Positions 15,332 through 43,442 of a DNA stretch of 64,000 nucleotides are shown here, piece after piece. The stretch covers positions 14,322,001 to 14,386,000 of the forward strand of contig CM119376.1 of assembly GCA_051294905.1 (NCBI GenBank), written 5' to 3'. The position numbers and the translations under genes were made by a program. How positions within the stretch are numbered: the first letter of the stretch is position 1; every line of letters begins with the position of its first letter. Origin of the DNA: Botryllus schlosseri (taxonomy: Eukaryota). Under the pieces are notes generated by a model. It was not told where the DNA came from. It saw only the letters and a program-made list of their open reading frames with translations, and made no database searches.

Positions 15332-15451
15332 ATGAGGCAGTTAACGTTCATCCTTGGCATAGCATTGATCTTTTCCGATAGTCTGACATGTATAGACGCG
15401 AAAGTCATTGACATGGGTGGATCATTCGTGGTCAGCGCCGAGAACAACAAG
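15332..15451 (+). CDS. ITIH-1 exon 1 (signal peptide)
   Basis: MRQLTFILGIALIFSDSLTCIDAKVIDMGGSFVVSAENNK then gtatt donor; same 120-nt length as the paralogue exon at 52514-52633. Confidence 0.85.
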
Positions 15452-18400
15452 GTATTAATTATTGCTCGGATTTATTGCAAATATACACGGGTAGCAGCAT
15501 GTTATTACATCACCGGGACATGATCCAGCTGTATAGTATATGCACTACCATACGCAGAAAGCACGCACTGGTGAGGCCATGCGTCATAAATTGTGCGGTT
15601 CGCACCTCGTTGCGACATCTGATCCCCCTCATTACATTTGCTGTTTTTCATGGTTTTCGGCATCATCGATGTTTATTTTAAACCAGACCGACATTCGATT
15701 TACGATTCCTGACCCCCTATACTTATAGCGCGGCTGATTTCGTTCTTGGCTTTTATAAGGCATCCAATGGTGATCAGCAGCCTAAATAAACATCCGACAC
15801 TGCGAAAGGATTCTCGGTTCTACCTAGGTCGGACTCGAACCAGCAATTTACTGGCGTTGCAGCAGTAGATCATACACTACCCAGCCACAATACCATATTT
15901 TAGAAATATAGTAGTGTTTTAGACAATGGGTAATCGCGGCAGTGTATGTATATCGGCATAAATCGACTTTTGTAACTATGAAATATTTCGATCGACAAAT
16001 ATGCAATCAAATTAAACATGGTTAACGTTTAACGGGTTTTGATACTCTTAAAATTTCAGTCGCGACAGAAACGTTCCATCGAGTCTTCCATGACTGAGAT
16101 GCACGTGAAAAGCGTCGTGAAATCTCGCTTTGCGAAAGTGACTACGACAACAATAATGGAGAATTCCGCGGAAGAAGCTAAAGAATTGACGTTTTCAGTG
16201 AGGCTACCCGAGGCTGCATTCATCAGCAAATTTACGATGTGAGTATTATTTGTTAATGGGTGAATGATCAACATATGAATACGATAAATAAAAGGGTTAC
16301 TTAACGAATATAAGCACTAAACAGTAAGCGCGTACCAAGTCCGTTATCCGCGTAGGTAGTCTTGTTTACAATTAACAATTGGGATTGCATCGAAGGACAA
16401 ATCGAGGTCGAAAGCTGTTGGGAAAGAATGTCGAGAATCCCATACAATTCAGTAGCTAGAGCTTTCATTGACTGTTCAGTGTTCACTGTTCAGCCTGTAG
16501 TGTAAACGTGGAAGTAACATATTTCGCATGCTTGAGACCATAGGATATAGCCTTGGTATGACATGTAAATGAACACTTGAACAGTGATGATGAGGCTCAT
16601 TATACTGCGTGCATGTAAAGTAAGAACGACTCAGTGTTCATGTTCAGTCTTCCCTGCTCAGTATTCATGTTCAAGCCAATTCAGTAATGTCAAATCAAGC
16701 CAATAGCGGGGTCGCTGCGCGCGGGAAACGATAACTTCGTCATTAGGCCAACGAGCTATATTGACGGTCATGAAGTCGTAAAGTGTCACGAATCGCTTGA
16801 ATATTCCGATTAGATCAATGGTTATCAACCGGGAGTCCGCGAAGCATTTTCAGGGGGTCCGGGAAGCCTCTAAATTTTCAAAATAATTGATAACCTGAAT
16901 CTGTATTTTTTAAACCAGGAAAAACTTTCGCTTCGTTACTAGTAAATCTCCAGAACTCACATCAACAGAATGGCCGTCTGAGTTGAAATATCCAACTGTT
17001 CAGACTCATTTTAATTGCTAACTTACCAATAGTCCACTGCAGGGGCGGGCAACTTCTCCAGTCGGCGGGCCGCCTATAGGAAAATTAGGAACTTGGCGGG
17101 CCGGATTGCTGAATCGATACATTATTCGCCCATTTATCCACATATACAAGGAATAAATCGTATTTAATGAATGTATTTTAACGACAGCATTGTAACTTCA
17201 AAGCCATTTCTCGCCAATAATGACGAAGACAATATGGATTTGAGAACAGCATTGTCATACAGGCACCACCACGCCTGCTACTCGCTGATCAATCAACACG
17301 CGGTTCAATCCTTAATTAAGATTTCAAGGCTTTCGATAAGCCAAGATATCAATTCATTAGGGTTTAGTAGGTGACGAGATAGCGTGGTTGTTCAACTATG
17401 TGGCCTATTTTATTTCGATATTGAATTCATGCCGCCCTCGGCATCTACGAAATTTGAAAGTGGCCCCCGACCCTTTTTGAGTTGACAACCACTGGCATAA
17501 GCGGTGTCTTACAGAAGCCTAGAAGTGTCCCGTGCTGCAAGTCGACGGTTACGGAATAAAAAATAAGAAATATCGGCCTGGTGTAAATGACCATTGTTGT
17601 GGACAAACACCATGATCACCACAAATGACATTAGGGCTGAGTACATCCTAAATGCCGTTATGCAATTAGTCTTCTCGCTTCTACGAACTTACGCGTAAAC
17701 TCCACCCTCGCTCGCTGCGCAATGCGCAATTGCGCATACATGTGTATAATGACATACAGTCACTAAGATTTGATGTATGTAAGCAAGTAGTTGGGAATGT
17801 CGGAAGACTGGGGCCGCGGGCCACATTATCATGTAAGGCGGAAAGCTGTCAGCGGGCCGGACAAAATACCTTCGCGGGCCGGATCCGGCCCGCGTGCCGT
17901 ATGTTGCCCGCCACTGGTCTACTGATACATACATTTTGCTATTTCGCGATATTTTGTTGGGGATTGTGGAAACAATAAAAAGTTGGATTAGGAAGGTCAA
18001 TCACGAGGACTTCGAAATGTTTACAAAAATTCATTTTCTCCTGTGAAATACATAAACATTTTCCATGATAACTTCAGTCGGTGTCAGTATCAGTTTAATA
18101 ATATTTTCATCATTTTAAAACACCACAAATCTGCGATACAAATCAGTTTTGGTGCCACATTTGTTGCGATCATACCCAAATGTGTAATCGGAAGCAATAC
18201 GCCTTTTTATTACATTCACCACCACCTATATTTGTGGAAATGGATTTTCGGCACACATTCATATCAAATCGACGGCTCGGATTTTGGAGACTCGACCACG
18301 TATTTCAAGAAATGCAGTTGCAAAATTAACTTCGAACAAACAAAAGTCAATCCAATTTCTACGTGAATAGTATGATGTTATTTCGAAGAAAAGTCATTTT

Positions 18401-20919
18401 GTTGCTGGTTATCACTAGCCTACGGATATCACTTGCATAAGACAGATGACGAATGTAAGATAATTGAGCTAAATTTGAACTAAACTTTTGGGGGGTCCGC
18501 GGGGTCTGTGACGGTCCAAAAGGGGTCCGTGAAGACGAAAAGGTTGAGAACCATTGGATTAGATTATAATCTAATTATCGCTACAAAATTTTGTCATTAA
18601 TGTGATGTCAAGATTTTGCAACTATACAGTCGTGCGGAAACTTGAGATGTCTTGTCTGTGGAAAACATCATTTCATACACCATGGCGTAATTTCGTTATA
18701 GCTTGCGCTTGCCGACCATCATCTTGGGCGTTGAAAGTTATCGTAGCAGGCTTTGATAGCGGCCATTATTTCCACAATTCTATGTATGCCAGCATAAATA
18801 ATTATCCAGAGATCAACTCTTGCTAACTTACTCTCTCAAATCAAAACGAAAGCAAAGGAACTATATTTTAAGAAACACTTTTCTAAACATCAAAATAATC
18901 CACGTGAAACATGGAGATCCGTAAATCGTATTATCAACAGAAAATCCAACTCTCAGGCACCTAACAAAATAAAAGATTTTGTTTCTGATCAAATGGTCTC
19001 TGATCAGTCCCGGATGACTGAGATCTTTAATAGTTTTTTTTCTACCATCGGCACAAAACTCTCGGAATGTTGCTCGAATGAAGATGTCGATCACCATCAT
19101 ATTTTTGGAAAACGCCCAAGTTCATCATTCTATCTTCAACCAACGTCACCAAATGAAGTCATAAGTGTTCTATCTACACTGAAAAACAATAAAGCTCAAG
19201 GTCACGATCAACTACCTGTCATTATTGTCAAACACATAGGCATTCACCTAGCAGATACCATCGCTAAATGATTCAATTTCTCATTTTCTTCAGGGATATT
19301 TCCTGATTACTTGAAGATTGCACGTGTGATACCTGTATTTAAATGTGGGGACAAAACCAACGCAAGCAACTATCGACCCATTTCGATATTGTCACCGTTT
19401 GCCACTCTGCTTGAGAAAATATTATTTGAGAGACTTAACAGTTATCTCAATAAAATGAATCTCTTAAACTCAAATCAATATGGTTTTAGAAATAACCACA
19501 CAACCTCTCAAGCTATATTACAGGTTACCTCAAGGATATATGAGCTCATTGACTCTAAAAATGTTGCCACTGGTGTGTTTTTAGATCTGAAAAAGGCATT
19601 CGACTGTGTCAATCATTCCAAACTAGTTGATAAACTTGAATTCTATGGTATACGTGGACTTGCAAAAATGTATTTCGAATCTTACTTAAATAATAGGAAA
19701 CAATTTGTTCATATTGGAACAACGCGTTCACAATTACTACCCATACAGACTGGTGTACCTCAGGGATCAGTTCTCGGGCCCCTGCTGTTCATAATTTACA
19801 TCAATGATATTGGTCATTTATTTGACAATGACATCACACTGTTTGCTGATGACACCAGCCTAGTTATACCCCGTAAAAATTTATCTGATGCATTTGACAA
19901 CATTAACACTAAGCTATCGACAGTGTCAAAATGGATGGCATCTAACCAACTTCAGCTCAATGCCTCCAAAACCAAAACCCTCGTGTTTCATACACAAGTC
20001 AATCGCAGTGGAATTATAGTAAATAACGCACATCTTGATACACATAAAACTGTTAGATATCTTGGCATTATCATTGATGATAAACTTGGATGGTCTGACC
20101 ATATCAACAATATAAAAACTAAAATCTCGCGTGGTGTCGGGGCTCTCTATCGCCTTAAAAATTTAATTCCTCATCAAACTCTCAGATCAGTCTACTATGC
20201 CTTAATTCACTGCTATCTTATTTATGGGATCCTAGTTTGGGGACCTGCTGCGAAAAAACATCTGCAGAAATTGCAAGTCTTGCAAAACCGAGCCATACGA
20301 ATTCTCTGTCGGAAATCTAGATATGAGAATTGTAATAGCATGTATCGTAGCGTTGGAATATTGAAAGTGGAAGACGTTTTCAAATTTGAGGTAATGAAAT
20401 TCATGCATAGTTATCATCAGGGTGAACTGCCACTATATTTTGATAATCTGTTCAAAATACCTTCAGATACCCACCAACATCATACCAGATTTTCTTCTAA
20501 CTTGTCTCTGTCTGTGCAACACCACTCTACCAGTCTAGTACAAAATTCAATCAGTTTTATTGGTGTCAATGTTTGGAATAAGCTGCCACCTAATCTCCGC
20601 AATTTAGACTCTTGTGCTTTTAAAAAACAATGTTTTCATTCTCTTATCTCTAACTACCGCTAAATTGTATTTGTGTTGTATTACAAATTGGTCCGTGATA
20701 CTGTGTCTTATTTTTCCTATCGTTCGTTGGATTATTTTAATTTAATTTAATTTAATTTTATATTTTTTCATTAGTTATCGACTGTGAAAATTGCTCCTGT
20801 CCCGGGTGGCTCGGCTCTGAAGACTATGTCATATCGAGCCTCCCGTCTACCTTGCATGTCGCATTTCACTGTTACATTTTTTGTAGTGTTATGTTGATAT
20901 GTAATGTATACGAATAAAG

Positions 20920-20962
<43 letters not shown>

Positions 20963-23900: not shown

Positions 23901-26900
23901 GGACTAATATTAAATTTTTTGAAAGATTCTAGTACAGGGGTCACCAACCTTTTTACAACCGAGGGCTACTTTTGCATAATGATTGAAGCGGCGGGCTACT
24001 GTTTACTCCTGCCGTTTACCCGTACCACACTGAATTTCCGCTTTGATATTCATAGCACTGGGCAGGACTGGACATCGTGTTATCTGTTTCTATAGCAGTC
24101 CGTGGGAGGCCTGGCATTGTATGATATCAATTAGCTGTACTCTGGTATGTGACTTGACACTGCAATTCTGAATGAGTGTTCCAGATGTGCATTGATTGAG
24201 CGTGTTTTGTGTTTGCTTTTGATGAAGTTCATGTCCGAAAAGGCTGATTCACAGCGATAAGTTGGACCATAGACGCTTGTAACCTTCATAGCTGCTGCGC
24301 ATACACCAATGTACTTTTCCGTATCAACAATGCACCACATGTTTGCTGCAGACTGAGGTGGGGGTCATTTTGCAGTGTTACAATTTCAATCTCCAACTAT
24401 TCAGCATCCAGAAATGACAAGATTTCATTATACCGGACAGCAGCAACGATTACAGAAAGTTAGACACATGGTATATTAAACTGCGTTGAGTGTAACAGAA
24501 ACAAGCTGTGCAAAAAGATGCAATACGTAATGGGTATACATATATTGAAAATCTGCTAGTACTTAACGGCTATCTGACTCCGAATAGTAATATTGTTTAC
24601 TACTTTGGCATTGTCCTGGTCGTCTAGCTATCGTAACGGAACCCCCCACCATTTCAAGAGGACCGTGGACGGCATTCCGTCATGTCGCCTTTATAGGCAA
24701 TGCGCCGTATCTTGAATTTCTGGTGATTCTATCACGTACATCTATATATTACTAATTGTAATTGAATATATTTTTAAGTGTATATATATGTAAGTTACAT
24801 GTTAGTGTGTTTTAAACAAGAAGAGCTGAATCAATCAATCTGTATATTTAAAAGCTCACTGGTAATAATCTGACGAATATTGGTAAATGCTGCTATTCCA
24901 CCTATTTTTAGAATCGGCTCGCGGGCTACTCATCTAGTCCTCGCGGGCTACCTGGTGCCCGCGGGCACCGGGTTGGTGACCCCTGTTCTAGTACAACTTT
25001 CGAAAGCAGCTGCTCAGCAGTCAGCTCAGCGGCTGTTGTATTGTATACCATCATTGAGCAACTAGCCATGTTTACATCTGGTACCTCTTTTGAAAGGAAT
25101 GTCGATGGCACATTGTTTGTGGGCAAGGTAAAAGAAAAGGCTGTGGCTAAGCAGGAATATGAAGGAGCTGTCAAAGCTGTGAGTTTGGTTGCACGCGATG
25201 CTTTCTTTTTATATATTTGTAGCACTATGTCATCATAATGCAGTGGTTCTTAACCTTTATTAAACTGGCGAACCCTTACGCTACTCGGCAAGCCTTCGGT
25301 GAACTACAAATTTTCGCTGAGTCACAATAACAAAAATCTACCCTAGTACCATTTTAATACATTACTGTATAACACCAATGCACAAAATGAATTGTGTATC
25401 TACATATGACTTCGGTAAAAGTACAAGACCGTTAAATCATGATATCACTAATGAAATGAAGGAATGAATCGGCATCTCAAAAGGACAGAGTTTCGAGTTC
25501 GAAGTTATCGCGCCTATTTCCCTACACCCAATGATGGTCAAGACATGCATACCACAATGAATCTTGGACTTGGGTGTGTGTCTTGACATCTGACGAACGC
25601 CCATGGCCGACTCAGCGAGCCCCGTGTAAGAACCACTGTCATAACGTAGCATATTTGGCCCAATTGATAACGACACGCTATTGTGCAGACTAAATTGAAT
25701 GCAATTTGCAGGGCAACTCCGCTGGATTGGTTACGACTAAAGTGCGCGAAACGCAGACATTCAACGTCGCCGCCAACGTACCGCCACAAGCGAGAGTCGT
25801 ATTCGAACTTGAGTATCAAGAGCTGTTGAAAAGAAGACTTGGAAAATACGAGCAGGTCCTATTTATCAATCCTGGCCAAGTAAGTACACAGAAATCCAAT
25901 CGGAGGCTTTTCCATATCTGTTCACATTGCTAATTGATTGATAATGCCAGATCGTTGATGATTTGTCACTGAATGTATACATAACCGAGGAGATAGGAAT
26001 CAGTACATTGGAAGCTCATCACCCTCAAGGCGGCGAAATGAAGTATAGACGTTTAGTGATTGGTGGATACGATTCGGGCGGCGAGGTGGACATCAGCGTA
26101 CAAATTAGAAGAAGTAAGCATCAGGCGTCAGTCAGGTATTATCTGAGTTCGCTTCACGTCATAACACAGAGACGAATAAAGCAAACGCTGTAATCCTTTG
26201 CAGTTTCAAACCCAACCAAGCGCAGCAGCGGCGCTTGTTGATGATTCCGGAAGATGAGCGCAGAGTGAGCGTAGTATATGACGTCACAAGGGAGAATCTC
26301 GGCGGAGAGCTGCTGACGCGAGACGGTTACTTTGTTCATTTCTTCGCCCCTGAGAATTTGCCGGTGTTACCGAAAAAGGTGGTGTTCGTCATCGACCAGA
26401 GTGGGTCGATGTACGGCAAGAAGATGAGTCAAACGAAAACCGCATTCGAAACTGTACTAAGGGGCATGTCTGACGCAGACGAGTAAGACAATGCTTTGCT
26501 TTCGATTTGGGCTACCTGAGGCCGCAACAAATCCCATTTCCGTTCAAGGTTCAATATTGTAACATTTTCGAATGACGCCCACGTGTGGAAATCTTCTGGG
26601 CTGGTGCCAGTTACGGAAATGACGGTGGAACAGGCCGTACATCACGTGAAACGTATATCTGCTAGTGGAAGTGAGTGGGGAACTGGAAAACGATTTTGCA
26701 TAATTGTGACTCTGCGTGTATAGCTTTGAGTCCAACCAGGACAAAACAGCACTCTCTAAGCCCCCAAAATGCTGGTCTGGGCCGCGATGGGGAGTTCAAA
26801 GAAAATGATGGGTATTCCCCCAGGCCATCCTTCTATGAGAGAGAGAGAGAGAGTCTTTATTTTCATCCAACCAAAATACATAACACACGGCAGTGGTGGT

Positions 26901-29900: not shown

Positions 29901-32900
29901 ATGCCACTCGGTCAAGACCAATGTTCCCTCTAATTTTTGATGAGTCTGCGCACACTCACCAACTCACTGCGCATACCCTTGGACAACAGTGCATATCGAC
30001 TAAAAAAGGTCATTACTTCGGATTTTGTGTGAGCAACTTAGATTTTCTGTGCACAGAGACCGTGTCAGCGTTATGCGTTATGCGTTATGCGTTATGCGTT
30101 ATGCGTTATGCGGTTATGCGTCCGGCTTCTCGAGCGGAAGGTCGTGGGTTCGATCCCCGGCCGGGTCATACCAAAGACTCGAAAAATGGTATCCGCAGCT
30201 ATCCTGCTAGGCGCTCAGCAATCACGGATAGCATGGAGGAGAAAAAAAAACGGGGGCGCAGACTAGATGACCTCATGGGGCCGTATCGCAACTCCGTCGC
30301 CAAAGCATCTCGATGGTGCAGGCGAGAAAGAATATCATATCTCTCTCTGTCAGCACTGCGCATTTGCGCACGTGCGCAGCTTAGAGGGAACATTGGTCAA
30401 GACTATTCATGAGGCTTATAGCCCCGCATTAGCAGTTTGCAAAAAGCACAGCGCACACTCCACACCAACAGACTAAATAACACATCCCAACGGTCTCAAG
30501 TGATACTAGGAAGTTATTGTTCTCTCATAGTTGCGCATATACGTTTGGACTCATTTCTGTAAAATAGGCAAGAAAATTTTAATTTATGTTGACTTACGAA
30601 ATAATTCTGGGCCCCTACGAGCTTGGGCTCCTAAATTGGGCTGGTTTGTTTTGCGGCAGATGCGGTCCCGAGTCCTTCATTATAAGTGTGTGACGGTGTG
30701 CAATGTGCATGTGTGATGAACAGGGCCACGATTCGAACACTCGAATTCCAATTGAGAGTCGATTGCAATGATTCGAGTCGAGAAGTGAAAGGCGATTTTT
30801 CCAGTATAGAAATTAAATGCACTTTGCTCTTTGCTACTTTATCTGCAAGATTCATAGTTTCGATGCTTTCTTTCTCCTATTGGAGCCTCAAACCCCGATT
30901 GACCGTATCACAGTACCCAATGCGTCAAAGACGCGTGGAATCGATGATATCTAACTCTTTATATACCCTACATTGTTGATTTCACTCCTAGGTACCAACC
31001 TGAACGACGCTCTTCTGAAAGCTGTTGAGATTTTGGGTACGACAGAGCGCAGAAGTGACGTCTTAACTACGATTATCGCTCTGACCGATGGTGATCCAAC
31101 GGTGGGAGTCACCAATGAAAAGGCAATCCGAGAAAACGTAAAGTCGAGCATCAGAGGAGCTATCTCGTTGTTCTGCATTGGCTTCGGCAATGACTTGAAT
31201 CACGACTTTCTCAAGAAGCTGTCCAATGACAACGACGGCGTCGCCAGGTAGGATACCGTAACAAAATAACCCCAATACTAGGGTCACCATATTTTGGAAT
31301 CAGGAAAGGTGGACACTTTGTAAAAAACAGAAAAGTTAGCTTACCGAAATTGAAAACGGCTGGTTTTGAAATATTTAGTCTTGTTGTGTTCACTAAAAAA
31401 ATTAAATCAAAAAAGGTCATCACTATGATCTGACTCCCGAATGACCAGCTCGAACGTCTGCTTTACATATTTCGCGTCATTTATGCCGATTTTCAGTTGC
31501 TCCTGTCCATTAGCCTGTCTGTAAAAGGTGTAAAGGAGGACGGAATGCTAAAAAAAGAGGACATTCAGGCGTCCTCGGAGGACATTTTTAATTTCCTGAA
31601 AAATGAGGATAAATCCCCCTAAAGGAGGTCGTATGGCAAACCTAGATGATACTCAGGCTTAAGAACTGCCGGGAATTTTCAATATTGAGTTTCGTGCAAA
31701 GGAAAACTCCAGTGTGAACGATCGGATTCAAAATATTTTTTATCAAGCCGCAGTTGCAACCGGTACATCTTTGTCCAATGGGTCGCGAGTTCGAGTACGA
31801 CTGCGGTCGACTCCAGAATTACAACCTACCGTAAGTGCTGGAGGTTTATCAGTGTTTAACTATAGATCACTAACCTACCGAGAGATACGCAAGTTCAGAC
31901 GTCACGCTTGTACAAACAGTGTCGTTTACTGCTGCGCAAGGCAAAAGAAGCAATATTGGTAATCCTACAGATTGCTTCCTGACTGCAAAATTTGGCGGAA
32001 CTGGTTAAAATCGAAAGCTACTGTCTCAATGGTTCCGAAATACAAATTAAATCTTATCCCAAGGTCAGAAATCTATAGCTTCACAAAAGCCTAGACTCTA
32101 CCGGTAAATGTCATCAAGTATGCCGAGAGAGGAACACAATATTCATGCAACACTGATAATATCGACAATATTGAATCTATAACTCTAAAAGAATTTCGAG
32201 CTTCGCGTGACTATACAAAGTAACTACACTCTGATTTTTCAAAACCCTGTTGCTAGCTATTTCAACTCGTTCATGAATCGTGAATCGCGTACCCCGTTTT
32301 TAAGTCGGATGCATGAAGGGTAATGATGAAATTACCCGTAGAGGTAAAAGGGTTATGAAGGCTTCGTTGTCCAGTGGTTAGCTTGATCATGATCACCCTA
32401 TGAAGGCCAAGACCGACGTTTTCGGGGGTGGAGAGCTGGTCGCAGCTACACCCGCTTTATTGACACCACAAAATCAAACGTGTTGTTTTGGTAGCCTAAT
32501 GGACCGCCAGTTATTTGAAAAAATGCCAAGAGACCGTTTCATGAATTTTTATGAAAAGTTTAGGAACCACTGAGATATACAATTGCTCATCTGTATGAAT
32601 TGCTGGTATGGGCGATAAGCTGAATTTTGTACTTGAAGCGATCGCTGAGATCATTTTACGGCGGCGCTATGGTCAAAATGCTTTATACTCTGCAAAATAG
32701 AGTAAATACGTTAGGCATATGGCGTATGTGACCGTCGGAACTGCAGCAACACTCTCAGTGAACTCGACTGGTTTACCGACTTTGGATACGCGGCAGATTG
32801 ACAGAGTCTTGCGGTTACCTGGCGGTATGCAATGTAACGCAACGCAACTCATTTCTTATTTGCATCGCAGGAAGATTTACCCGGACTCCGACGCACATCT

Positions 32901-35900
32901 GCAACTGGAAGGGTTTTTCCAGGAAGTGGCCACCCCATTACTACTCAATGTCAATATCCGCTACATCGGCATGAACATCGAAGACGTTAGCAAATCCAAA
33001 ATCGATAAATACTTCAAAGGCTCCGAAGTTGTTGTTGTTGGAACCATGCTGGAGCGTGAGTGTCTAAGAATATGTAATGGATTTGATACTCGATATATCA
33101 TTTTCTGTCGGAATTTCAAGCGACACTAGCCAATGATTCTGAATATGATCTGCCCGCAAATTTGTGACATCTCCAGCACCGTTTGTCAGGATCGCGACTA
33201 ATTTATGGATTGGACACGATTCATACTGCAGTGGTAATGGCTTTAGTGGTAATGAAATCATTACGCGCCTCTGAATATTCGACTTTCGACGCATAATATC
33301 TTAGAGTTGCGTTTGACAAGTAGGCTACTACTATAATATATTACCTATTTTCGTCATAGAACGTGGTCTGATCCGACTTATCATATCAGTGATGAGCGGA
33401 TATTGATTCTTGAGAATCCGAATCCGTCCGACAGCTTGAGTTTCTGAGGAACTATCCATCCGAATCCGAACAATCGCAACCAAAAACCCATGCGAATCCG
33501 AATAATGTCGTCCACAATTCGAAAAATCCGAATCGAGTAACTTTTCCGAAGAATCTTAATTGTACATCTGAGCTGCTTTCAGGGATAAGCAGTAAACACG
33601 GTTCTGGTGCACAAAGGTTTAGCAGCTAAGCATTACTCATCACAAATACCCACCCACCCACACCTGAGCTGCGAATAGTTTTTAGAAAGGCTAAGGTTAG
33701 GAATAGCTGACATCTAAATTTGCTTTGACCTTTGAGTGAACAAATTTATAGTGTTACTAATCCTATCAGAACGTGTTTACTGTCCGTGTTTGGTTGTCGA
33801 TCTGACGATTTTTTTCTCTTGAATTCAATCACGTCACGTCACGTCAAGTCACGTCTGGTCAGAACTATCCAGAAATATCCGAAGCAGAAGTTACAACTAT
33901 CCGAAAATATCCGAAACAAAATCTACAATAGAATCCGAATCCGATCCTACTGTCTTAAATTGTCAACGAAACCGATCCGAACCCTATCCGAGTCCGTCCG
34001 ATACTCATCACTGGCTCATATGTGCGTGTCAGCGCCACCAAACGCCGAAATTATCCACGGACAATCCCGCCGACTGGCGTAATTTCACAACATGCTTTCA
34101 TTAGGAATAGCCATAACATTCAATGTATCTGTCACAGAGACGCTGGTCGAAGCACAAATTACCGGAACAAACGGGGAAGGAAATGTAGAATACACTACGG
34201 TTGGTCAAGAGATTGACGAGGGTTTTAGCCATACCGAAGAAGACACCGGCAGTTTCAGCAACTTCATTGAACGATTGTGGGCGTATTCCACCATCAACGA
34301 ATTACTTAACGACAAAGTGTTGGTAGAAACCCAGGTACGCGCGGGCAATCGGGCATGAGCAATGTTCTTACATTTTCATGATTATAGGCGAGTTTTACCC
34401 GGTAAACCCCTTTAGGTGGGATGAAGTATGTTTACGTGAATCATATTCAACCGTTTTGGCTAATAGCCTATTTCACCTCAGATCTTAATATTTCGACTTA
34501 TGAACGTTCGTAACTTTTTCTATGCAGGCGGAGGTGGATACTATCACGGCAAAAGTTACCAGTCTCGCATTGAAGTATAACTTCGTCACTCCATTTACCT
34601 CGATGGTCGTGGTTTTACCGGAAGATGAAATAACTACCACTGCTGGTAATTGGTCTTCTTAATCTTATTGATTGCGCAATGGATTCCGCACTGTCGTAAA
34701 TAGGAGAGACAGACTCACCGAGAGAAGGATTGATTAATTATTTGTTTGTAAAATAGCGAAAAATAATCATACAGTCATATGGAATCATATGGAACGCGAC
34801 ATTTCCATATCCAATATCCTCTTCACTCGTTCCATATCATACTTACAATTTCCCATACTATAGCAACATTCTTATACTATATTTGATTTTTCGTACTTTC
34901 TCAGTTGCCCAATATTTCGGATACTATTCTATTTGTGATGTGTGAACATTTTCCGGCGTCTACATTCCAGTTAATTTAGATGAAACTAACAATCAAACAA
35001 CTCTGACGCATCAATTCCATTCCCAAGTTCTTTGTGTCAGCAAATCAACGATATGTACAACTTATAAGTTGGCCTTAATCATCGAAGACAGAACGTGAAA
35101 TATATGCGGGATTCTTCGAGAATCTCAATAGAAGCACGATAGATTCATAACATGTAAAACTAGAGTGCCAACAGACTGCTAGCAGTAGTGTACAGATACC
35201 ATCGACAAAATTGCATAACCCAAAAGTATTGTCGCCTTAGAATATATCTCAGACTATTATTTTACATCGATCTAATCATTAAGGATGTTGAGATGGTGGA
35301 TCAAGTCCAATTTCCCACCCCCATGCATGCATGCATGATGCATGCGTCATATAGTCACAAGATTTATTAACCAATACCAGTGGTATCCGTTGCTTACTCA
35401 GGAAGAACGAGATTAAATGAAATTACAATGCGTGTTCGAGGAAGAAATTTCGTAACAAAGCTCCGATAAATTATATTTTCGTGAATTTCAGTGGTACTCA
35501 GCCGCCGGTCCGTGGGAAGTTTCCTGCCGGTCCGCCAAATATATTAGCATTTTGTATCTCATTTCCAAGAGAAATTGGACGCTTTTACATTAATTAGGGA
35601 AATAAAACATCAAATTTTAAATTGACCAGTAGGCTTGGGACTTATCTTGTGCATGGTCTACTCTGGGCCTACATCACAATGGTGCAAGTGCTGTACGAAA
35701 CTGGAACTTGTTTCCGTCAAGTTATGTGTGAGGCCTACGGAGACTATAAACAAATTTGGTTAAATTCCGTCAGCGCAATTAGGCGACACTTATAAAAGAG
35801 GCTATAGCAAACAGAAAACTATAGCATTTCTTTCAAAGGATACCAAACAATCGCAATCAAGTTAGTGCTCTATGACTTCGCGACCTTCGCCTTGCAAAAA

Positions 35901-38900
35901 CTTTAGTATAACCAGCACGTATAAATATCGAATATCACCAAGGCAGCAATAACTGAAGTTTTCAATATTATACCTGCGTTGCATACATTTGTCGCAATAA
36001 ATTTTTGGGTGAATTTTGATTTTTGAAGGTTCACCGATCCGCAACATTTATTTTGAAGTTTTGCCGGACCACGAGGTCAAGAAGGTTAGGAACCACTGAA
36101 ATGAAAATGATGCATTTGTCAAAATCATTGCGCGACGATAATAATCCGAGCGAAGCGCAAAGTTTAACGAGTTATTATATATATATTCCAGTGACTGTAC
36201 ATTTTTAGAGTCTATGATTTTAAGACTCTTGGCAGTTTGCGGCAGTGTTCGGATCAAGCCACTATCTTCGAGTCACCCTCACGAGCCATCACGAGTCATT
36301 GCACATTTTGATTCGAGTCAAGTCAAGTCAATCGATTTTCGAAGATGACTTGAGTCAAGTCGACTCAAGTCAGGTCACGAGTCAAGTCGCGATTTAAGCT
36401 AAATTGAATTTTCTAAGTATGAGTGATGATGCAAAGTCATTACATTTTGCCAACTGGGTGAAAGACAGATTAATTGGTCATTCATTTTGAACCAAATAAC
36501 GAATATAAAGTTAAATAAACATGCAAAAAGGCGTTGTATCGTTCTTGCACACGTAGAACTGCTAATAAAATACGCGAGTAACTGCGTATAGCTACATACT
36601 ACAGTCCGTTATTATCAGCCAAAATAGAGGCTCGAATAATAAGCCTCGAGAAGTTGAAACACGTTGATATAGTACAATACACTAACCATCTACACATCCA
36701 TGAGAATATAGCGCATAAAGTATGTTCGTTCGATTTAAATTATACAAGAGTGCTGGTAAAGGTGAGCACTGCGTAACGTAAGCACTGGGCCGTCTAAGAA
36801 ACGAAGATACGTTGCTATTACATTAATCTACTAACAATACGACAAGGTAAGCTGTGATCGTTTCGTTTGCAGTCCATTTATTTGTGATGTAACAATGGAG
36901 GATCAGGGAAACGTACAATCAGTGAATGACTGGTTGCCCTCACAAGTGACATCGGCGTATCGTGACAATCCGAACGTACATAAGATAGGGTGATGTAATC
37001 GACACCGTTTAATTGATAACTTGGAATTGACTCGTAAAATTTGCACCGAGTCACGAGTCAATTGACATTTCTGAAGCGCCGAGTCAAGTCAAGTCATTTT
37101 TGTAAGTGACTCGAGTCAAGTCAAGTCATACGAAAAAGTGACTCGAGTCTGACTCGAGTCAAGTCATGTTGCACAACTTTGTTGGCTTCAAAAATATCTT
37201 GACCAGGGTGGGTGGGACCATCTGAGTTGCAACTTGAGACTTGAACAGAGATCTGCCAGTAAAGGGTTTCTTGGGGTATGCAATCTGGTGCTGCTAAAAC
37301 TGACAGAGTAATTCCATACCATAACATAAACATACTTGGAAATTTCCATACCATAACATGAACAATGAACATATTCGTGCACTTCCATATTCCATATCTA
37401 CATTTCGTTCCATACCATACCACACCATACTGTGCCCTATCTATTTATAAATATTGCGCGTTTATAGGCACACTTGCTTCGAAACATCAACATCACCTTC
37501 ACCAATGTTTTTAAGGTCACCATATTAACATGGCGGCCCTTTATGCCGGAAAATGATTTTGTCTCTCTAGTGTTTTCTCATTACACGTCGGATGATCGGT
37601 ATTATAAGTATTTCGGTGAAAAATCCAATGTCTTCATGAAATCGTTGTCCAGTTTGGTTGCGACCAAATCCATAACACGATGGCTCTATAATAATCAGAC
37701 TCTTCAGGGGCTCAGACTATCGATGACCACTGACAAGTTTTGCATTCTCCCCGGATCGAGTCTCGTAAATAACACGTTTCGAAGGTGCCGGGGATATACC
37801 TGGGTTCCTCCTTCCATACGTCGCTGTTTTTATGTCATCTTTCTGAAAAAACTCCCAGAGAATGATCCGGTGCTCCTACAGAATTCATGTCTGCTGCCTG
37901 TTCTGATTCAAGCTCCACCGGATCCGTTCATTGTTTCGCATTTTACATTGTTTGTCTTGAATGGATGAAAACAATAGAACCGCTGGAAGGCGCTGATTAT
38001 GATCATGATTATCGAAAAGTAACGACATCAACTCAACATGTTTCTCTTATTTACCAGCCGATTCCACCGTGTCACCGATTCCCGTATGCCTGAGACGTGG
38101 ACAGGAAGTACCACAAAACTCTGAATCCCCTACCATTTCGTGTCCTTATATATTCGAGGGGTCTAGGCAAGGCACGGCATCCAATTGGAATTCGGTCGCG
38201 TCACCGCGAGGAATCCCTGCACTTCAGCCCAGAATGTTATCACATCACAGCCGCGGTCGAATGAGGTCAGGCAGCCGCGTGTCTTTCATGGCTAGAAGAC
38301 GCAGGATAGGAGTCGGTCGGAAAGTTGCCAGCCGCGCGAGAATGAGCAGTGCGAGCATGAACACCGCACTGAACATTGCACTGAATCCGTATCCGTCGCA
38401 CGATGCTATGAGTGCAATGAGCTTCGCCGACGAGGATGTTTACCTGCCTCCTCCTCCAGGTAAATATTCCGACACTGCTCTCATAACCTCGCATTCGACA
38501 CGTCGTATTTTGTGGTGTTGCGATGCTGTAAGAAGCGAATATCGTTCAAATGACCTGTCGGGCGTGAGCGCCGACAGTTGAATGTCCTTCTCCAAGCTCA
38601 TCACATCAGCATAATTGATATAGGTTTCTTGTTTTGGAATTAATGAGTGCATACGGCGTATCGCAGCCAATATATTTCCAATACATATAAATAACTGTAC
38701 ATTCTGTTTCTAACTAGTATTGTATATCCGCTATAGGTGTCCCGTTGGTATTGTCGTTGTCGAAATAGGGATGTTGTTGGTGGTTGTTCAAGTATTCATA
38801 GTGTTTCCACTACTTTAATCATTTTACACCAATCCGATACCATATTTGCATTATAATTTCTGCGCTGCCAACTTATAGCACGGTCCACTTTCGTCCTAGG

Positions 38901-41900
38901 CTTTGGCAACACCCGGTACCTAGATAAACCTCCAGGACTTAGCTAGAGGTTGGGCTCGCAAACCGTGGTGTTGCAGCTGTCTACTCTAAATCGCCAACCT
39001 GCGGTCGGATATACATATTGTCCTTTGTGGTATGTATCGAATGTAACCATTGTTTACATTCGATAGTATATACCTGTCAGTGAGGGGGAAATCGCCAAAT
39101 TCCCTAGTCCTACTCGGATCCTGTTTCTTTAAAATGGAATCCAGCTCCGATCCGGCTACAAGCCCATAATAAAATATTCCTGCCAATATCCATCCCAGAT
39201 CTGACTAAATCCTACATACCACTCCTAGTACTCCGATCGTATCAGAAAAGGTACGAATCCGGCTCCGATACGGAGCCGGACTGTTCAGCAAAAGTATGAA
39301 TCCGGATCCGATCCGAATCCAGTCAAAAATAAAAAAAAACAATCAGGCAAATATCCAGTTCATGGATGATGGATTATCCACGCCCCGCTCTAAGAAGTTG
39401 TATGAATTCGAGACAGCAACGCGAGATACAATTACCTCTTACCATGAACACTGCAATATCATTGCCTAGAGAGTAATCATTCCTTCTTTGGTAATGGGGG
39501 ACCGTCTTTACGAAATTTCACGAAATTGCCAGCAATTCGCAATTTCGTTTTTAGACTGTGGGTTTGAGTGATATCGCGTCTTGCATCTATTTAGCATGTC
39601 CCTTGGATCATGTGCAATGCACACTGTGCATATTGTATCAAATAGAAATAGAGATTACAATAGAGATTAACATCGATAAAAAGAACTGCGACATCGGACA
39701 CTAGGTCGAGCTCGATACCAGTTTAAGAAACCAAACTGGTCGTTCGGCATCCTTCTATCTATTCGTTACATCGCATTGTGTCTTATCGCATTGTACATTG
39801 TCTTGATCAGATGAAAATATAATCCGACGATTGTTGATATTGAAGTGGGACACTGTGGGTATAGGTGTGGTCACAATCAAAACGTGGGTGTAAAAGAAAT
39901 TGTGGTGATAAAGCGACGATATATAGATCTACCTAACTCTAACATTCGCATTTGGCCGTTAACGAATTGGTTGGTTACGCCCATCGTCATATTTCCAATA
40001 TCTCAGTCTGCCACTGGGTACGTGCCGCGCTGTGTGTGTGCGAAGTGAATTCCTTGTTATATTTCTCGACATAATCGGCATTGTTGATACGTTTTTGTCA
40101 ATTTAGCGGAGCCTGAAGTGTCTTCTCATTGCGGAGGCGTACTAAGCAGTTCGGAGGGGACCATAAATTTACCTTCTCTACAATCCATTCACAGTTCACG
40201 GTTCCACTGTGATTGGGTGATTGAATTTCCCTCTGGATCATGGATAGATTTATACGTGGGCAGAATTCAAACAACTTCGACAAAGGTATGTTTGAATATT
40301 ATACTTATGTGCGTGTGTTGCATAAATTTGATAATGGAATGTGTTTTCAATACTTCGAATCAGTCGATCTCCAAATCGATGCGATTACGTTTCATAGTGT
40401 ATTGACAAATCTATCGGGTTGATTTTAATTTTTATATTTTCATATTCCTATGTTTTACCAAGTATATTTTTTCCAAGTACATGAGTATAGTTTTTGTTAC
40501 TTAAGCAGTTCATATATAGATTATAGCCTCACGTGGTTAAATAGTATATAGATTCAAATTGCCGTATTCTCATGTTGAAGTTGGATAAGCAAAAAAATAA
40601 CAATTCGATGAACTTATAACATGAATACTATTAAAATCATCCTAGTCATCGCACAATATCAATGCTGTCTCATGATCGCGAGATGTGAATTCGCCATTGC
40701 AATTATATGCGCAACTGTTGTCAGTAGATCCAATTCGGGTAGACGTGTCATACACAGCACATACACCGTTTGATGTTGAAGAATAAATAATCTAGAATCC
40801 GTGTATAGTCTTGAACTTGATGATTTACGGCTGTGTGCCTGGGCACGTTTGAAACCTATGGGTTTTCACACTCACTTTCAGTAGTCGATATAGGCCTGCT
40901 TCGTAAATCGGTAATTTCAGTTGTTCACTCGAATAGAATCTTATGGTATTAAAAGTAGATGCTGCAGTATACCATTAGTGTACTATTAGATCGGGGCATG
41001 GACCATAGCTGAACTGGGTATTCGGCCAGATATTTTCATTTTTGGTCGAAGCAGGATCGAAGCCGGTTGCATATTTTTTCTGATACGGTCAGAATCGGTA
41101 TTGAGGCTAATTATGAACATGAATGTTGCATTGCAACCACAGGCCAGTAGCCGCCAATACAAACCCGTAAGATTTTATTGTCATCTACCTAATGTTGCAC
41201 TCTTCAAGAGCCTGAACCCCATAGCGTATGAATTAACAAACAGCATTGAGCTAATATATCGATACGATCAATGTCATATGAATATTATTTCCTTTATCGA
41301 TCTAATGTGATCCAGTTGAACTTATTGGTTGTTTCACCTTGACCATTAGAGCCTGCTGTATTCCACCATTTACGAATGAACGCGAATCAAATACCGCATT
41401 TCCGACTCGGACATGAGCATTGGGAAGATACCCAGTTTTCCAAATCCCGCTCCAGGCTTTTAATCTAAATCCTAAATTCAGTTTCATCTTAACCCTCCAA
41501 AACAGTTTGCGTCGTAAACATCACATTCTCCGCTGTGTTGTAGACGTAGTAGAGATAATAGTCATCGTGACAACCGTTACGTGCGACGTTCAGATGATTT
41601 GTATGCTTTATTTTCAGATAAAAGTTACTAGCGGAAACGAGGAAATATTTCGTCACCGCCGCGGACGCTACGGGCCGAAATACTTTTCGATCACCACAAA
41701 CATCTTGAATATTCGAATGACCGTTGACCCGACAGAAACAGGAGAGGAACACGTCACAATCACGTACAGGAAGTGTGAGTGGAAAATTTGATGTCGCTAA
41801 TCGCGATTTTTTCAACATTTGAATGAAAAATATCAGCGTTGCTGAGATTCGACGCGTAGATATTACTATTTATGCGAGTTTTCGTAGTTTAGTGTAGAAG

Positions 41901-43442
41901 ATCAGCATAGATACTATAGATCCATGAAAAATGACCCGATGACATCGACGAAGACTGCCTATTGTCGGATGTCCAACAATCAGATACGAGATAGGCATGA
42001 ATATAACGATATCGTAATTATGGAAAATGCACTGTAGGGGTGTATGAGTGCGTTGGTTTCGTTTTTTTTGTGTGCCACCCAAAGAAGGCACAGAAAGGTG
42101 GGAAACGTAAGCGGAGATATAACTCCACGAGAATTGGTGTAATTGACTCGTTCTCACCCATTCGAATTGGTGTGAAATGTAGTATTTGGTACGAGAAAGT
42201 GCCGCTAGCCTGATTTTCACCATGTGCAATGGTTGAAATATGGTAAATACACCTTCCCCACTCACGTACATATTCAGTTATTCACGTTCATACACAGTGC
42301 ATATTCTCTAAACGTGTTTATGTGTAATTGTGTATATTCGTCCGAATTGATGTTAATGTAAGTCTCCAATTCATGAATCAAAACAACACTACATATAAGT
42401 AGATTTCGATCATACATATACAATATTCTCATTACGTAGTAATTTACCATGAAGTACATCAAGTTCTTTCTTGGAGAATTAAGTTGTGACCATCAACATG
42501 TTTCAAAAGCGAATTCGCAGACACTACTTACTTTTGCGAGAACTGCCTCGTTATGTTCAAACTGTTCAGGAATTTTGATCAAGCCAATTCAGTTTCGAGA
42601 TGGTATATGATGTGTCAAGGCATGTGCTATTGTAACGGATGAAATGAAGTCGACATAAATGTTATCACTTATACCGTTTTCGAATAACTAGCAGTTTAAT
42701 CGAAACTACTTGTGATGGACCATAACCACTCAATGTATCCAGTTGACTGACATGTTAATTATATGCCGGCGGGATGCCCTTGACATATCTCTTCAAATAG
42801 TTTAAATTGCATTATGCAAGATTGTGAGTGTCTAATTAGATATGGAGTAGCATGCGTCAAAATCTACGGTCTGACCGCGAGTTTTCTAGGTGATACAATC
42901 ACATAAAACATCACCTTGTGAATTTCCATTGTTCATCGAATTTTTCCACTGAACAACAGTTCTTTGAATACCGTTTCGAAACCGTATTGACTTCACACCC
43001 GCAAATATCGCTGTCGTTTTCAGTTGTCAACACGAGTATCGCAGACCCGATAAGCGATCAATTTGCCGAATTACCAGCGACACCCACCTGCGGTTACGTG
43101 ATTTCCTCGGGCCTCGGACAAGGAACAATCTCAAGCCCTAATTATCCAGCCGCCTACCAGCCGAACACGTTCTGCGAATGGGAATTCGCGGTCGACACCA
43201 ACGCGACCTTACTGAGCCTTCATTTTGCCGAAGTAGACATCGAAACGAACGAGCACGAAAACTGCGTCGCCGATCGTGTCACCGTTGCCCAGAGTTCGTC
43301 ATCGCAAACGGTTTGCGGGATACAAAACGACTTGGTAATTGATGTGAGTCCAGACTCCGCTCACGTGATAGTTACTTTCAAGAGCAACAATGCCATCGAA
43401 GGAACCGGATTCGAGATGCAGTACGAATACATCGAACGATAG
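15332..43442 (+). CDS. ITIH: ITIH-like gene 1, 15 exons, about 1015 aa: SP-RQKR-VIT-vWA-ITIH core-linker-CUB-like-CUB
   Basis: Exons 15332-15451, 16060-16238, 25097-25178, 25712-25879, 25951-26135, 26204-26482, 26549-26670, 30992-31247, 32871-33055, 34138-34334, 34528-34645, 38058-38459, 40107-40285, 41618-41774, 43024-43442. All GT-AG and phase-compatible, total 3048 nt. ITIH motifs: [82 protein letters not shown]. Confidence 0.9.
15720..15888 (-). mobile_element. tRNA-derived SINE in ITIH-1 intron 1
   Basis: Minus strand tggctgggtag...GGTTCGAGTCC (A/B-box-like); the cloverleaf is not intact. 3' boundary approximate. Confidence 0.55.
16060..16238 (+). CDS. ITIH-1 exon 2 (RQKR, VIT start)
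   Basis: tttcag acceptor, gtgagt donor; SRQKRSIESSMTEMHVKSVVKSRFAKV...AAFISKFT. Confidence 0.92.
16816..18556. mobile_element. hAT-type element with nested MITE 17040-17916
   Basis: TIR CAATGGTT(A/C)TCAACC, TSD GATTAGAT; inner TIR CAG(G/T)GGCGGGCAAC with TSD gtccactg/gtctactg. Confidence 0.85.
18798..20960 (+). mobile_element. 5'-truncated CR1/L2-group LINE (ORF2 RT part) with (CT)19 tail
   Basis: One frame from 18798 to 20663 with a single TGA at 19269-71; NYRPIS, FLDLKKAFD, GVPQGSVLGPLLF, LFADD, YLGIIID motifs; 3' UTR stem-loop 20804-20844; AATAAA 20913-18; CT repeat 20923-20960. Confidence 0.92.
20978..22989. mobile_element. hAT-type element with GATTAC arrays
   Basis: TIR CAGACATGG(G/A)GT; TSD CTTATAAT (20970-77, 22990-97). 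Confidence 0.9.
23232..23861. mobile_element. TAGGG-TIR hAT-type MITE; partial relative at about 2780-3140
   Basis: tagggttgttca / tgaacagcccta; TSD gtgtacat/atgtacat; long internal inverted arms. Confidence 0.8.
23935..24985 (-). mobile_element. hAT (Charlie/GTF2IRD2-like) deletion derivative with transposase C-terminal remnant at 24131-24340
   Basis: TIR CAGGGGTCACCAACC; TSD TTCTAGTA; SVYGPTYRCESAFSDMNFIKSKHKTRS dimerisation motif. Confidence 0.9.
25097..25178 (+). CDS. ITIH-1 exon 3 (VIT)
   Basis: NVDGTLFVGKVKEKAVAKQEYEGAVKA; phase 2 in, phase 0 out; gtgagt donor. Confidence 0.92.
25712..25879 (+). CDS. ITIH-1 exon 4 (VIT end)
   Basis: ttgcag acceptor; GNSAGLV...[26 protein letters not shown]; gtaagt donor. 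Confidence 0.95.
25951..26135 (+). CDS. ITIH-1 exon 5
   Basis: IVDDLSLNVYITEEIGI...HQASV; flanked by 71- and 68-nt introns; same length as the paralogue exon. Confidence 0.9.
26204..26482 (+). CDS. ITIH-1 exon 6 (vWA start, MIDAS DxSxS)
   Basis: FKPNQAQQ...[34 protein letters not shown]; gtaag donor. Confidence 0.95.
26549..26670 (+). CDS. ITIH-1 exon 7 (vWA)
   Basis: FNIVTFSNDAHVWK...KRISASG; gtgagt donor; follows a 66-nt intron. Confidence 0.92.
26922..28977. mobile_element. hAT-type element with GTAATT arrays
   Basis: TIR CAGAGTTGGATCAATT; TSD ATGCACAG (26914-21, 28978-85); internal diverged inverted repeat at about 27285-27420/27690-27820. Confidence 0.9.
28208..28634. mobile_element. 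Nested hAT MITE with AATCC arrays
   Basis: TIR CAGAGATGAGC; TSD CTATGTAC (28200-07, 28635-42). Confidence 0.9.
29055..29477 (-). mobile_element. 3' end of a second CR1/L2-group LINE running into the assembly gap
   Basis: FDDFF...HSHYTRSS...SIDYSGPIIWNALPPHIR resembles the C-terminus of the LINE at 19311-20663 (HQHHTRFS...SISFIGVNVWNKLPPNLR). The 3' boundary is approximate. Confidence 0.75.
29478..29618. other. Assembly gap (141 N)
   Basis: Run of N. Confidence 1.
30061..30400 (+). mobile_element. tRNA-derived SINE with (TTATGCG)n expansion in its head
   Basis: B box GGTTCGATCCC; body shared with the copy at 48441-48665. Confidence 0.8.
30992..31247 (+). CDS. ITIH-1 exon 8 (vWA, MIDAS T and D)
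   Basis: [11 protein letters not shown]...LTDGDPTVG...LFCIGFGNDLNHDFLKKLSNDNDGVA; cctag acceptor, gtagg donor. Confidence 0.95.
32871..33055 (+). CDS. ITIH-1 exon 9
   Basis: [24 protein letters not shown]...FKGSEVVVVG; gtgagt donor. Confidence 0.95.
33387..34013. mobile_element. hAT MITE with AATCCG arrays
   Basis: TIR CAGTGATGAG; degenerate TSD tatcatat/gctcatat. Confidence 0.75.
34138..34334 (+). CDS. ITIH-1 exon 10
   Basis: TLVEAQITG...NFIERLWAYSTINELL; gtacgc donor. The acceptor was chosen by phase. Confidence 0.88.
34528..34645 (+). CDS. ITIH-1 exon 11
   Basis: [34 protein letters not shown]; tatgcag acceptor, gtaatt donor. No ORF for it is listed in the provided track. Confidence 0.92.
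36243..37168 (+). mobile_element. Third copy of the AAGTC/GAGTC MITE, right end clipped
   Basis: Collinear with 8510-9489; lacks the terminal gactcgagtcatcccaacactg. Confidence 0.85.
38058..38459 (+). CDS. ITIH-1 exon 12 (Ser/Pro/Arg-rich linker, phase 1-1)
   Basis: Strong acceptor tttctcttatttaccag and donor CCAG|gtaaat; 402 nt open in the required frame; contains ARRRRIG and ends DEDVYLPPPP. Confidence 0.75.
40107..40285 (+). CDS. ITIH-1 exon 13 (CUB-like 1, N half)
   Basis: HCGGVLSSSEGTINLP...HCDWVIEFPSG (CUB N-terminal motif); gtatgt donor; phase-compatible. Confidence 0.8.
41618..41774 (+). CDS. ITIH-1 exon 14 (CUB-like 1, C half)
   Basis: ttttcag acceptor; IKVTSGNEE...SITTNILNIRMTVDP...VTITYRK; gtgagt donor. 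Confidence 0.72.
43024..43442 (+). CDS. ITIH-1 exon 15 (complete CUB domain, stop codon)
   Basis: CGYVI...GTISSPNYPAAYQPNTFCEWEF...DIE...CVADRV...VCG...FKSNNAIEGTGFEMQY; TAG at 43440-43442. An alternative in-phase acceptor exists at 43045. Confidence 0.88.

Follow-up and report, generated by a model that had tools for sequence, protein, structure and literature searches.

A predicted ITIH-type heavy chain with a C-terminal CUB tail in Botryllus schlosseri, a member of an ascidian subfamily

Can a heavy chain of the inter-alpha-inhibitor (ITIH) family end in CUB domains in the place of its usual C-terminal pro-domain, ITI_HC_C, and if so, what might such a protein do? The question is raised by a stretch of contig CM119376.1 of the ascidian Botryllus schlosseri, 64 kb long (~40% G+C, with long introns), which we call the window throughout. 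An earlier note on this DNA had proposed that an ITIH core is followed here by a linker, a degenerate CUB and a full CUB ending at a stop codon, with no DPHF site, and the gene model, Pfam and RNA all bear this out. The ITIH-CUB gene comprises 15 exons on the + strand at 15332-43442 (Table 1), its introns all bounded by GT..AG, and is read in a single frame of 1024 codons that runs uninterrupted to a stop codon at 43440-43442, giving a product of 1024 aa; the five junction coordinates proposed for its 3' part (34645, 38058, 40107, 41618 and 43024) were all recovered. We consider it likely that the product is a secreted ITIH-type heavy chain of an ascidian-specific subfamily, in which a linker and CUB domains have replaced the pro-domain, and which would act as a non-covalent, two-headed extracellular adaptor.

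The first matter to settle is whether the exons for the heavy-chain core and those for the CUB domains share a transcript. They do: the core exons are cis-spliced to the CUB exons, in one gene that is spliced and expressed. RNA from the contig sets of three studies (X2, X4 and X13) and from a raw-read run (X23) was aligned to 34450-40449. The joint 34644/5>38057/8 (GT..AG), which leads out of the final core exon, is seen in the contigs of X2, X4 and X13 and in two raw reads of X23, and the following joint, 38457/9>40105/7 (GT..AG), in all three contig sets; past 40285 the contig overhang continues as ATAAAAGTTACTAGCGGAAACGAGGAAATA, identical to the opening 30 bases of exon 14 at 41618. RNA depth in the exon-adjacent parts of the introns is zero. 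A single contig of 2965 nt (X2 record 7) carries exons 11, 12 and 13, with a further 1200 nt upstream and 1063 nt downstream. Going by length, the upstream part would reach exon 5, crossing the intron that holds the assembly gap, and the downstream part would cover exons 14 and 15 and ~490 nt of 3' untranslated region. These joints, together with the contig spanning exons 11-13, agree with the proposal that this is one gene whose transcripts continue past 40107. RNA thus crosses 34645>38058 and 38459>40107 as spliced sequence and 40285>41618 as an overhang. The last junction, 41774>43024, is placed by its phase and by a split codon for Phe that the six Styela sequences all share (Y-x-x-F), and is further supported by a share of 0.74 of the sampled words of 42894-43600 in RNA runs. 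For 38040-38600 the share is 0.70 in 13 RNA runs, as the exon at 38058-38459 predicts, and the last exon is present in the same 13 runs. An end of exon 14 at 41772 was discarded, as it breaks the frame; 41774 was chosen because it is the only end that yields the phase 1 needed by the acceptor at 43024.

Other RNA signals fall within the introns of this region. Two short patches of TGACTCGAGTCAAGTCAAGT-like units in intron 11 (36289-36407 and 37051-37170) reach an RNA contig depth of up to 572, against ~10-38 on the exons of the gene, and because this depth so far exceeds that of the gene exons, numerous copies at other places must account for the signal; similar repeats, reading 'SSQVKS', lie at 8.2-10.4 kb of the window on both strands. 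A short stretch at 39650-39849 is covered ~100x by raw reads of X23, with overhangs that resemble adapter sequence and a skip of 38 nt, a pile-up that has the look of an artefact, of low complexity or of the library, and not of an exon.

What does the gene encode? Pfam was run on single exons, and the gene product was otherwise examined as the predicted spliced translation, in which the order of parts is signal peptide, RQKR site, VIT, vWA with its MIDAS (the adhesion site that depends on a metal ion), ITIH core, Cys-pair motif, linker, CUB1, spacer and CUB2. Read from the sequence, a hydrophobic leader occupies aa 1-20. The dibasic site ahead of VIT follows the pattern R-x-[KRA]-R in all nine of the nine ascidian sequences aligned, with an invariant last Arg and, in the Styela protein P0157, A in third position. 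Exons 2-4 encode VIT (PF08487; lowest E 2.3e-10). The MIDAS is complete (DQSGS at 309-313, T380 and D412) and aligns with the vertebrate and ascidian motifs, its D-x-S-x-S, T and D all being conserved, and the strand that closes the core, of the FVTPLTSMVV type, stands at aa 618-627; the heavy-chain core is homologous over its full length.

The end of the protein departs from this familiar plan. The sequence DPHF(I/V) is the Asp-Pro cleavage and esterification site of ITIH1-3 and ITIH5, and is absent in ITIH4. DPHF is absent both from the 1024-aa product and from eight of eight ascidian homologues, and is present in the vertebrate-type proteins P0025 and P0017. As regards ITI_HC_C (PF06668), exons 12-15 give no Pfam match other than CUB at E<=1, and a tblastn search of the whole window with four vertebrate C-terminal domains found no ITI_HC_C-like coding sequence (best E=2.8). 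The sequence features therefore fit the proposed secreted vWA/MIDAS protein of heavy-chain type, with C-terminal CUBs replacing ITI_HC_C and the DPHF site.

Between the core and these CUBs lies a linker of 135 aa, rich in Ser, Arg, Ala and Pro, disordered-looking, and containing RRRR at aa 719-722; linker exon 12 has no Pfam family match, even at E<=1. The terminal module, CUB2 (PF00431), is a clear member of its family, scoring 62 bits (E=7.9e-17) where the cut-off is 21.4 and having four cysteines (C908, C936, C966 and C983), and among PDB sequences it matches the CUB domains of cubilin, C1s, MASP, PCPE, neuropilin and TSG-6. The Glu of its DIE and the Asp of its ADR align with DIE and YD of C1s CUB1; these residues presumably correspond to E45 and D53 of C1s, whose Ca2+ ligands we take to be E45, D53 and D98. 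The Ca2+-site Glu is found in every ascidian CUB2, in the form D-I/V/L/T-E.

CUB1 is a more reduced module. In the window its Pfam CUB match is limited to positions 1-55 and stays under the cut-off (E=1.2e-3), with none in exon 14; it has only the first Cys pair (C782 and C808), so that a second disulphide is missing, as are the residues of the Ca2+ site. It is conserved between the window protein and six Styela sequences, its family profile matches the CUB2 profile at P=2e-4, and Pfam recognises a pair of CUB stretches per tail in four Styela proteins, against one in Ciona. Modelled with AlphaFold, the Styela orthologue's tail (12 rows; mean predicted local distance difference test score, pLDDT, 72) forms two beta-sandwiches, of which the CUB2 domain has a pLDDT of 75-93, and this model matches tandem-CUB structures - neuropilin a1a2, PCPE-1 and C1r/C1s/MASP - over ~260-275 columns at E=2e-15. 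That CUB1 would be a degenerate CUB is well supported, albeit indirectly, with its fold taken from the model of the Styela orthologue.

Is this layout a peculiarity of one species? Searching exhaustively with exon 6, HMMER returned 902 relatives; P0004 (1001 aa, the nearest full-length relative) and P0009 (837 aa) have VIT, VWA and CUB, and the classical representatives have ITI_HC_C. A word-indexed search names relatives, several paralogues of them in Styela clava and others in Ciona intestinalis, Phallusia mammillata and Clavelina lepadiformis, all with PF00431 and none with PF06668, and each vertebrate match of the same search either has PF06668 or is incomplete, with CUB in none. The window protein itself is not in the protein collections, where its best matches stand at 61-68% (P0005, a 361-aa fragment) and 46-51% (Styela). 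Scanning another 55 ITIH-like representatives that lack DPHF turned up no CUB, and in the ESM Atlas a large VIT+VWA+CUB cluster is absent, with plain VIT+VWA clusters only. A search with the Styela tail alone brought up, beyond the query, one Styela paralogue (P0268) and no new taxa. That protein (604 aa) is annotated as 'zinc metalloproteinase nas-39-like', but we reject its reading as a metalloproteinase or as a CUB-only protein: it starts inside the FVTPLTS exon and repeats the CUB1/CUB2 tail twice, and by its sequence it models a further ITIH-CUB paralogue in truncated and duplicated form.

Other tails also occur in this family. Those of the 55 other ITIH-like (VIT+vWA) representatives include 11 of beta/gamma-crystallin type, P0018 among them, and three ITI_HC_C, and, from these domain contents, the VIT-vWA family seems to have exchanged its C-terminal tail repeatedly, in different lineages.

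A tree of the core region places the window protein within the chordate ITIH clade, with the ascidian sequences forming one clade (99 in the Shimodaira-Hasegawa-like approximate likelihood-ratio test) beside the vertebrate ITIH clades. The ascidian clade in turn splits into a one-CUB group (Ciona, Phallusia and Clavelina) and a two-CUB group (Styela and B. schlosseri, support 100), so that the predicted count of CUBs is two in the stolidobranchs (B. schlosseri and Styela), and one in Ciona, Phallusia and Clavelina. All of the ascidian homologues recovered are of the CUB form, and no ascidian ITIH with a pro-domain turned up in the homologue searches. As far as sequence can tell, the layout is that of an ascidian subfamily, fused in five species and already present in RefSeq and UniProt under automatic 'ITIH H3/H4-like' names; what is new is the predicted B. 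schlosseri member, the subfamily being already in the databases for at least four other ascidians. The layout had been thought specific to a lineage, and this holds, as it is met in ascidians and neither in the 55 other representatives scanned nor in the vertebrate matches; it had also been described as an unfamiliar architecture, which is right insofar as no vertebrate match has a CUB, but VIT+VWA+CUB proteins were already there among the ascidian models of RefSeq and UniProt. In the literature we found no paper describing ascidian ITIH-CUB proteins, and the sole mention found is of an 'ITIH H3' listed in the Ciona tunic proteome (PMC7401272).

How might such a protein work? It would be secreted by way of its signal peptide, and a furin-type convertase would trim an N-terminal peptide at the conserved dibasic site just ahead of VIT. 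Esterification to chondroitin sulphate, such as that of bikunin, or to hyaluronan would be unlikely to follow, because the Asp-Pro cleavage site and the pro-domain are missing; with no covalent link, we infer that the protein would instead serve as a non-covalent adaptor with two heads. The first of these would be the MIDAS of the vWA domain, taking an acidic ligand via Mg2+ or Mn2+, and the second the terminal CUB2, binding a protein partner as do the Ca2+-binding CUBs of C1r/C1s, MASP, cubilin, PCPE and TSG-6. CUB1, with its one disulphide and no Ca2+-site residues, could act with the flexible linker as a spacer. The likely setting would be the blood, the extracellular matrix or the tunic. 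An immune or matrix role, as put forward in the earlier note, may be conceivable from the domain content and from the 'ITIH H3' of the Ciona tunic proteome (PMC7401272).

Several points weigh against this picture. The exon 14>15 joint and the transcript's 5' half are predictions, the RNA alignments having covered 34450-40449. In CUB2, the third acidic Ca2+-ligand position is Asn (KSNN), where Asp (SDD/SDE) stands in eight of eight other ascidian sequences (five Styela models, Ciona, Phallusia and Clavelina), and because of this substitution the Ca2+ dependence of the window copy is uncertain. One Styela protein, P0155, is an annotated isoform of 756 aa without the CUB tail, and given this isoform, tail-less products may exist. 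Cleavage at the RRRR of the linker (aa 719-722) could remove the tail once the protein is secreted, which would leave it less of a single adaptor, and the literature yielded no ligand, tissue or processing data for the window protein or its ascidian homologues. As a side note on P0155, the isoform may reflect an alternative 3' end.

Could the CUB tail then be a pro-domain in its own right, one that serves folding or secretion until a convertase cut at RRRR frees the core and a CUB1-CUB2 fragment? We hold this to be unlikely. It is true that the multibasic RRRR sits inside a Ser/Arg-rich, disordered-looking linker, that vertebrate heavy chains shed a C-terminal pro-domain of 239-244 aa (PMC7170535), and that an isoform without the tail is annotated in Styela. 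However, RRRR is not conserved, there being no aligned multibasic site in the linkers of Styela, Ciona, Phallusia or Clavelina, while conservation of the CUB tail extends across orders of ascidians; moreover, CUBs are recognition modules in all solved relatives, and not chaperone-like pro-domains.

The reading of the tail as a lasting part of a two-headed adaptor presupposes that the tail belongs to this gene at all. Ascidians use spliced-leader trans-splicing, and the CUB exons might in principle form a separate downstream gene, for instance one trans-spliced at the acceptor of 38058, in which case the fusion would be an artefact of gene modelling or assembly. The 3.4-kb intron ahead of exon 12 would suit such an arrangement, as would the 'CUB-only' Styela model P0268 if taken at its annotation. 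Against this, contigs of three studies and raw reads join 34645 to 38058 in frame at a GT..AG intron, one contig spans exons 11-13 with 1.2 kb upstream, exon 12 does not encode a signal peptide, P0268 is an incomplete ITIH model, and the fused layout recurs in five species. A separate gene trans-spliced at 38058 is ruled out by the RNA joints for the main transcript, and in any form it is highly improbable.

The fused gene also has a neighbour. A second copy, paralogue 2, begins 9 kb past the stop of the first gene on the same strand, and continues beyond the end of the window; the lengths of its exons 1-7 are identical to those of exons 1-7 of the first copy. The two copies share 83% aa identity, with 0.10 nonsynonymous (dN) and 0.77 synonymous (dS) substitutions per site over 378 codons (dN/dS 0.13), and in the core-region tree they are mutual closest relatives, jointly sister to Styela P0157. 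From this placement, the duplication is specific to the B. schlosseri lineage, after its split from the lineage of P0157; from the dS and dN/dS values, it is old, with both copies under purifying selection. The earlier note had spoken of an expansion by tandem duplication under way: the tandem paralogue is indeed there, but a dS of 0.77 and a dN/dS of 0.13 describe an old and conserved pair, not an ongoing process. That the first gene might be a decaying duplicate of this pair, with no functional protein, is scarcely credible - the Asn of CUB2 where homologues have a Ca2+-ligand Asp, a vWA motif that reads GST for GGT, and the retroelements in its large introns might hint at decay, but 1024 uninterrupted codons, splice sites that are all canonical, spliced RNA present in many RNA runs, and the dN/dS of 0.13 against the paralogue over 378 codons reject it. 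Intron 3 of paralogue 2 contains, at 56428-61205, a head-to-head pair of retroelement open reading frames (827 and 669 aa).

Table 1. Exons of the ITIH-CUB gene, the assembly gap and the exons of paralogue 2, in window coordinates
Feature	Coordinates	Strand	Content and evidence
Exon 1	15332..15451	+	Start codon and signal peptide MRQLTFILGIALIFSDSLTC, aa 1-40; GT donor; length same in paralogue 2
Exon 2	16060..16238	+	RQKR dibasic site, aa 42-45, and VIT start; Pfam VIT positions 1-50, E=2.3e-10
Exon 3	25097..25178	+	VIT middle; Pfam VIT positions 46-77
Exon 4	25712..25879	+	VIT end; Pfam VIT positions 77-111
Exon 5	25951..26135	+	ITIH stretch between VIT and vWA; alignable to homologues
Exon 6	26204..26482	+	vWA start with MIDAS DQSGS, aa 309-313; Pfam VWA positions 2-32
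Exon 7	26549..26670	+	vWA middle, 41 aa; last residues KRISASG
Exon 8	30992..31247	+	vWA with MIDAS Thr (STNLND) and Asp (LTDGD); Pfam VWA positions 78-155, E=6.7e-9
Exon 9	32871..33055	+	ITIH core; homologue alignment
Exon 10	34111..34334	+	ITIH core ERLWAYSTINELL; exon end equals the RNA overhang before 34525
Exon 11	34528..34645	+	Final ITIH core exon; RNA joint 34645>38058 (X2, X4, X13, X23)
Exon 12	38058..38459	+	Cys-pair motif (C650, C668); Ser/Arg/Pro-rich linker with RRRR, aa 719-722; RNA joints at both ends
Exon 13	40107..40285	+	CUB1 first half (C782, C808); Pfam CUB positions 1-55, E=1.2e-3; RNA joint 38459>40107
Exon 14	41618..41774	+	CUB1 second half; RNA overhang past 40285 matches; conserved in Styela paralogues
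Exon 15	43024..43442	+	Short spacer, CUB2 (C908, C936, C966, C983) and stop; Pfam CUB positions 9-110, E=7.9e-17
Assembly gap (N run)	29478..29618		Within intron 7 (26671-30991)
Paralogue 2, exons 1-7	52514-52633, 52953-53131, 54689-54770, 62948-63115, 63181-63365, 63450-63728, 63788-63909	+	GT-AG, open frame

The assembly gap lies 2.8 kb past exon 7 and 1.4 kb ahead of exon 8. Exons 7 and 8 join in phase 1, matching A-GGTN(I/L)N without an indel in an alignment with 12 homologues, and the room between the Pfam VWA positions of exon 6 (2-32) and those of exon 8 (78-155) is exactly the 41 aa of exon 7; since the join is free of indels and the spacing is filled by exon 7, no coding sequence is expected in the gap. 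Within 1 kb 3' of the stop there is neither an AATAAA nor an ATTAAA, and an Rfam scan of the window gave zero matches. Intron 2 contains adjacent long open reading frames (157 and 463 aa) at 18798-20660 (+), on the strand of the gene, for the reverse transcriptase of a retrotransposon without long terminal repeats.

Why should the tail of an ascidian heavy chain matter? Ascidians stand in the sister group of the vertebrates, and their ITIH proteins would be without the covalent-attachment machinery - the pro-domain and DPHF - and would have CUB recognition modules instead, which helps to date the vertebrate inter-alpha-inhibitor system. Tail swapping within the VIT-vWA family is of some evolutionary interest too for the origin of inter-alpha-inhibitor, and the automatic names 'ITIH3/4-like' mask a distinct and uncharacterised ascidian subfamily. 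The proteins also offer a natural fusion with which to ask whether the heavy-chain MIDAS and CUB domains are old partners.

Of the known relatives, the 'ITIH H3/H4-like' proteins of Styela clava come closest. In blastp, window aa 20-1024 align with P0157 20-999 from end to end at 46%, and P0156 (43% identity) and P0154 (41%) likewise align end to end, both CUBs included. The order of parts is shared: signal peptide, dibasic site, VIT, vWA/MIDAS, core, Cys-pair motif, variable linker, divergent CUB and canonical CUB; like the window protein, the Styela two-CUB proteins are without DPHF and without ITI_HC_C. On the other hand, identity is only 41-51%, the linker sequence is unrelated, and Styela CUB2 retains the Ca2+-site Asp in SD(D/E) where the window copy has SNN. 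A collagen-like run of G-Q-x-G lies in the linker of P0154 (Pfam Collagen, E=3e-5).

Ciona 'ITIH H4 isoform X2' (P0165/P0009), Phallusia P0167 and Clavelina P0166 stand somewhat further away, with a core 37-43% identical to that of the window protein. They too have VIT, vWA and a C-terminal CUB, have no ITI_HC_C and fall in the ascidian clade, but their CUB is single, so that they align with the window protein over the core and the last CUB, and at lengths of 840-890 aa they have a Thr/Pro-rich, mucin-like linker and no Cys-pair motif. The vertebrate chains, ITIH4 and ITIH1-3/5 (HC1 structure 6FPY), are 37-40% identical over window aa ~50-640, and share VIT, vWA with its MIDAS and the closing FVTPLTSMVV strand; ITIH4 is like the window protein in having no DPHF consensus and a low-complexity stretch after the core. 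Unlike the window protein, which has neither, vertebrate chains end in ITI_HC_C (PF06668), with DPHF in ITIH1-3/5.

The last comparison is with a partner of the vertebrate chains. The CUB of mammalian TSG-6 binds HC1 in a MIDAS- and Ca2+-dependent manner, which requires Glu-183 of the CUB Ca2+ site and Asp-298 of the heavy-chain MIDAS (PMC4661386, PMC7170535), and heavy chains and CUB domains are therefore known partners. By analogy, the ascidian fusion could be a 'Rosetta stone' of the partnership between heavy chain and TSG-6, with a MIDAS-docking CUB built into the same polypeptide, although we think it doubtful that this is so. The Ca2+-site Glu of CUB2 would then co-chelate the MIDAS metal, either in cis, giving a self-inhibited state that a ligand could open, or in trans, with head-to-tail chains building a matrix without a covalent glycosaminoglycan link. 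If true, recognition between heavy chain and CUB would predate vertebrate hyaluronan transfer, and the vertebrates would have split it into two proteins. CUB2 of the window is, however, no nearer to TSG-6 (2wno, E=2.9e-4) than to the CUBs of cubilin, C1s, MASP and PCPE. TSG-6 (Link and CUB_C) has a CUB fold like that of the Styela tail (template modelling score 0.83 by target for 2wno, with 28% identity), but it stands alone as a protein that has a Link module and acts as a transferase, unlike the ascidian CUB, which is fused to the heavy chain itself.

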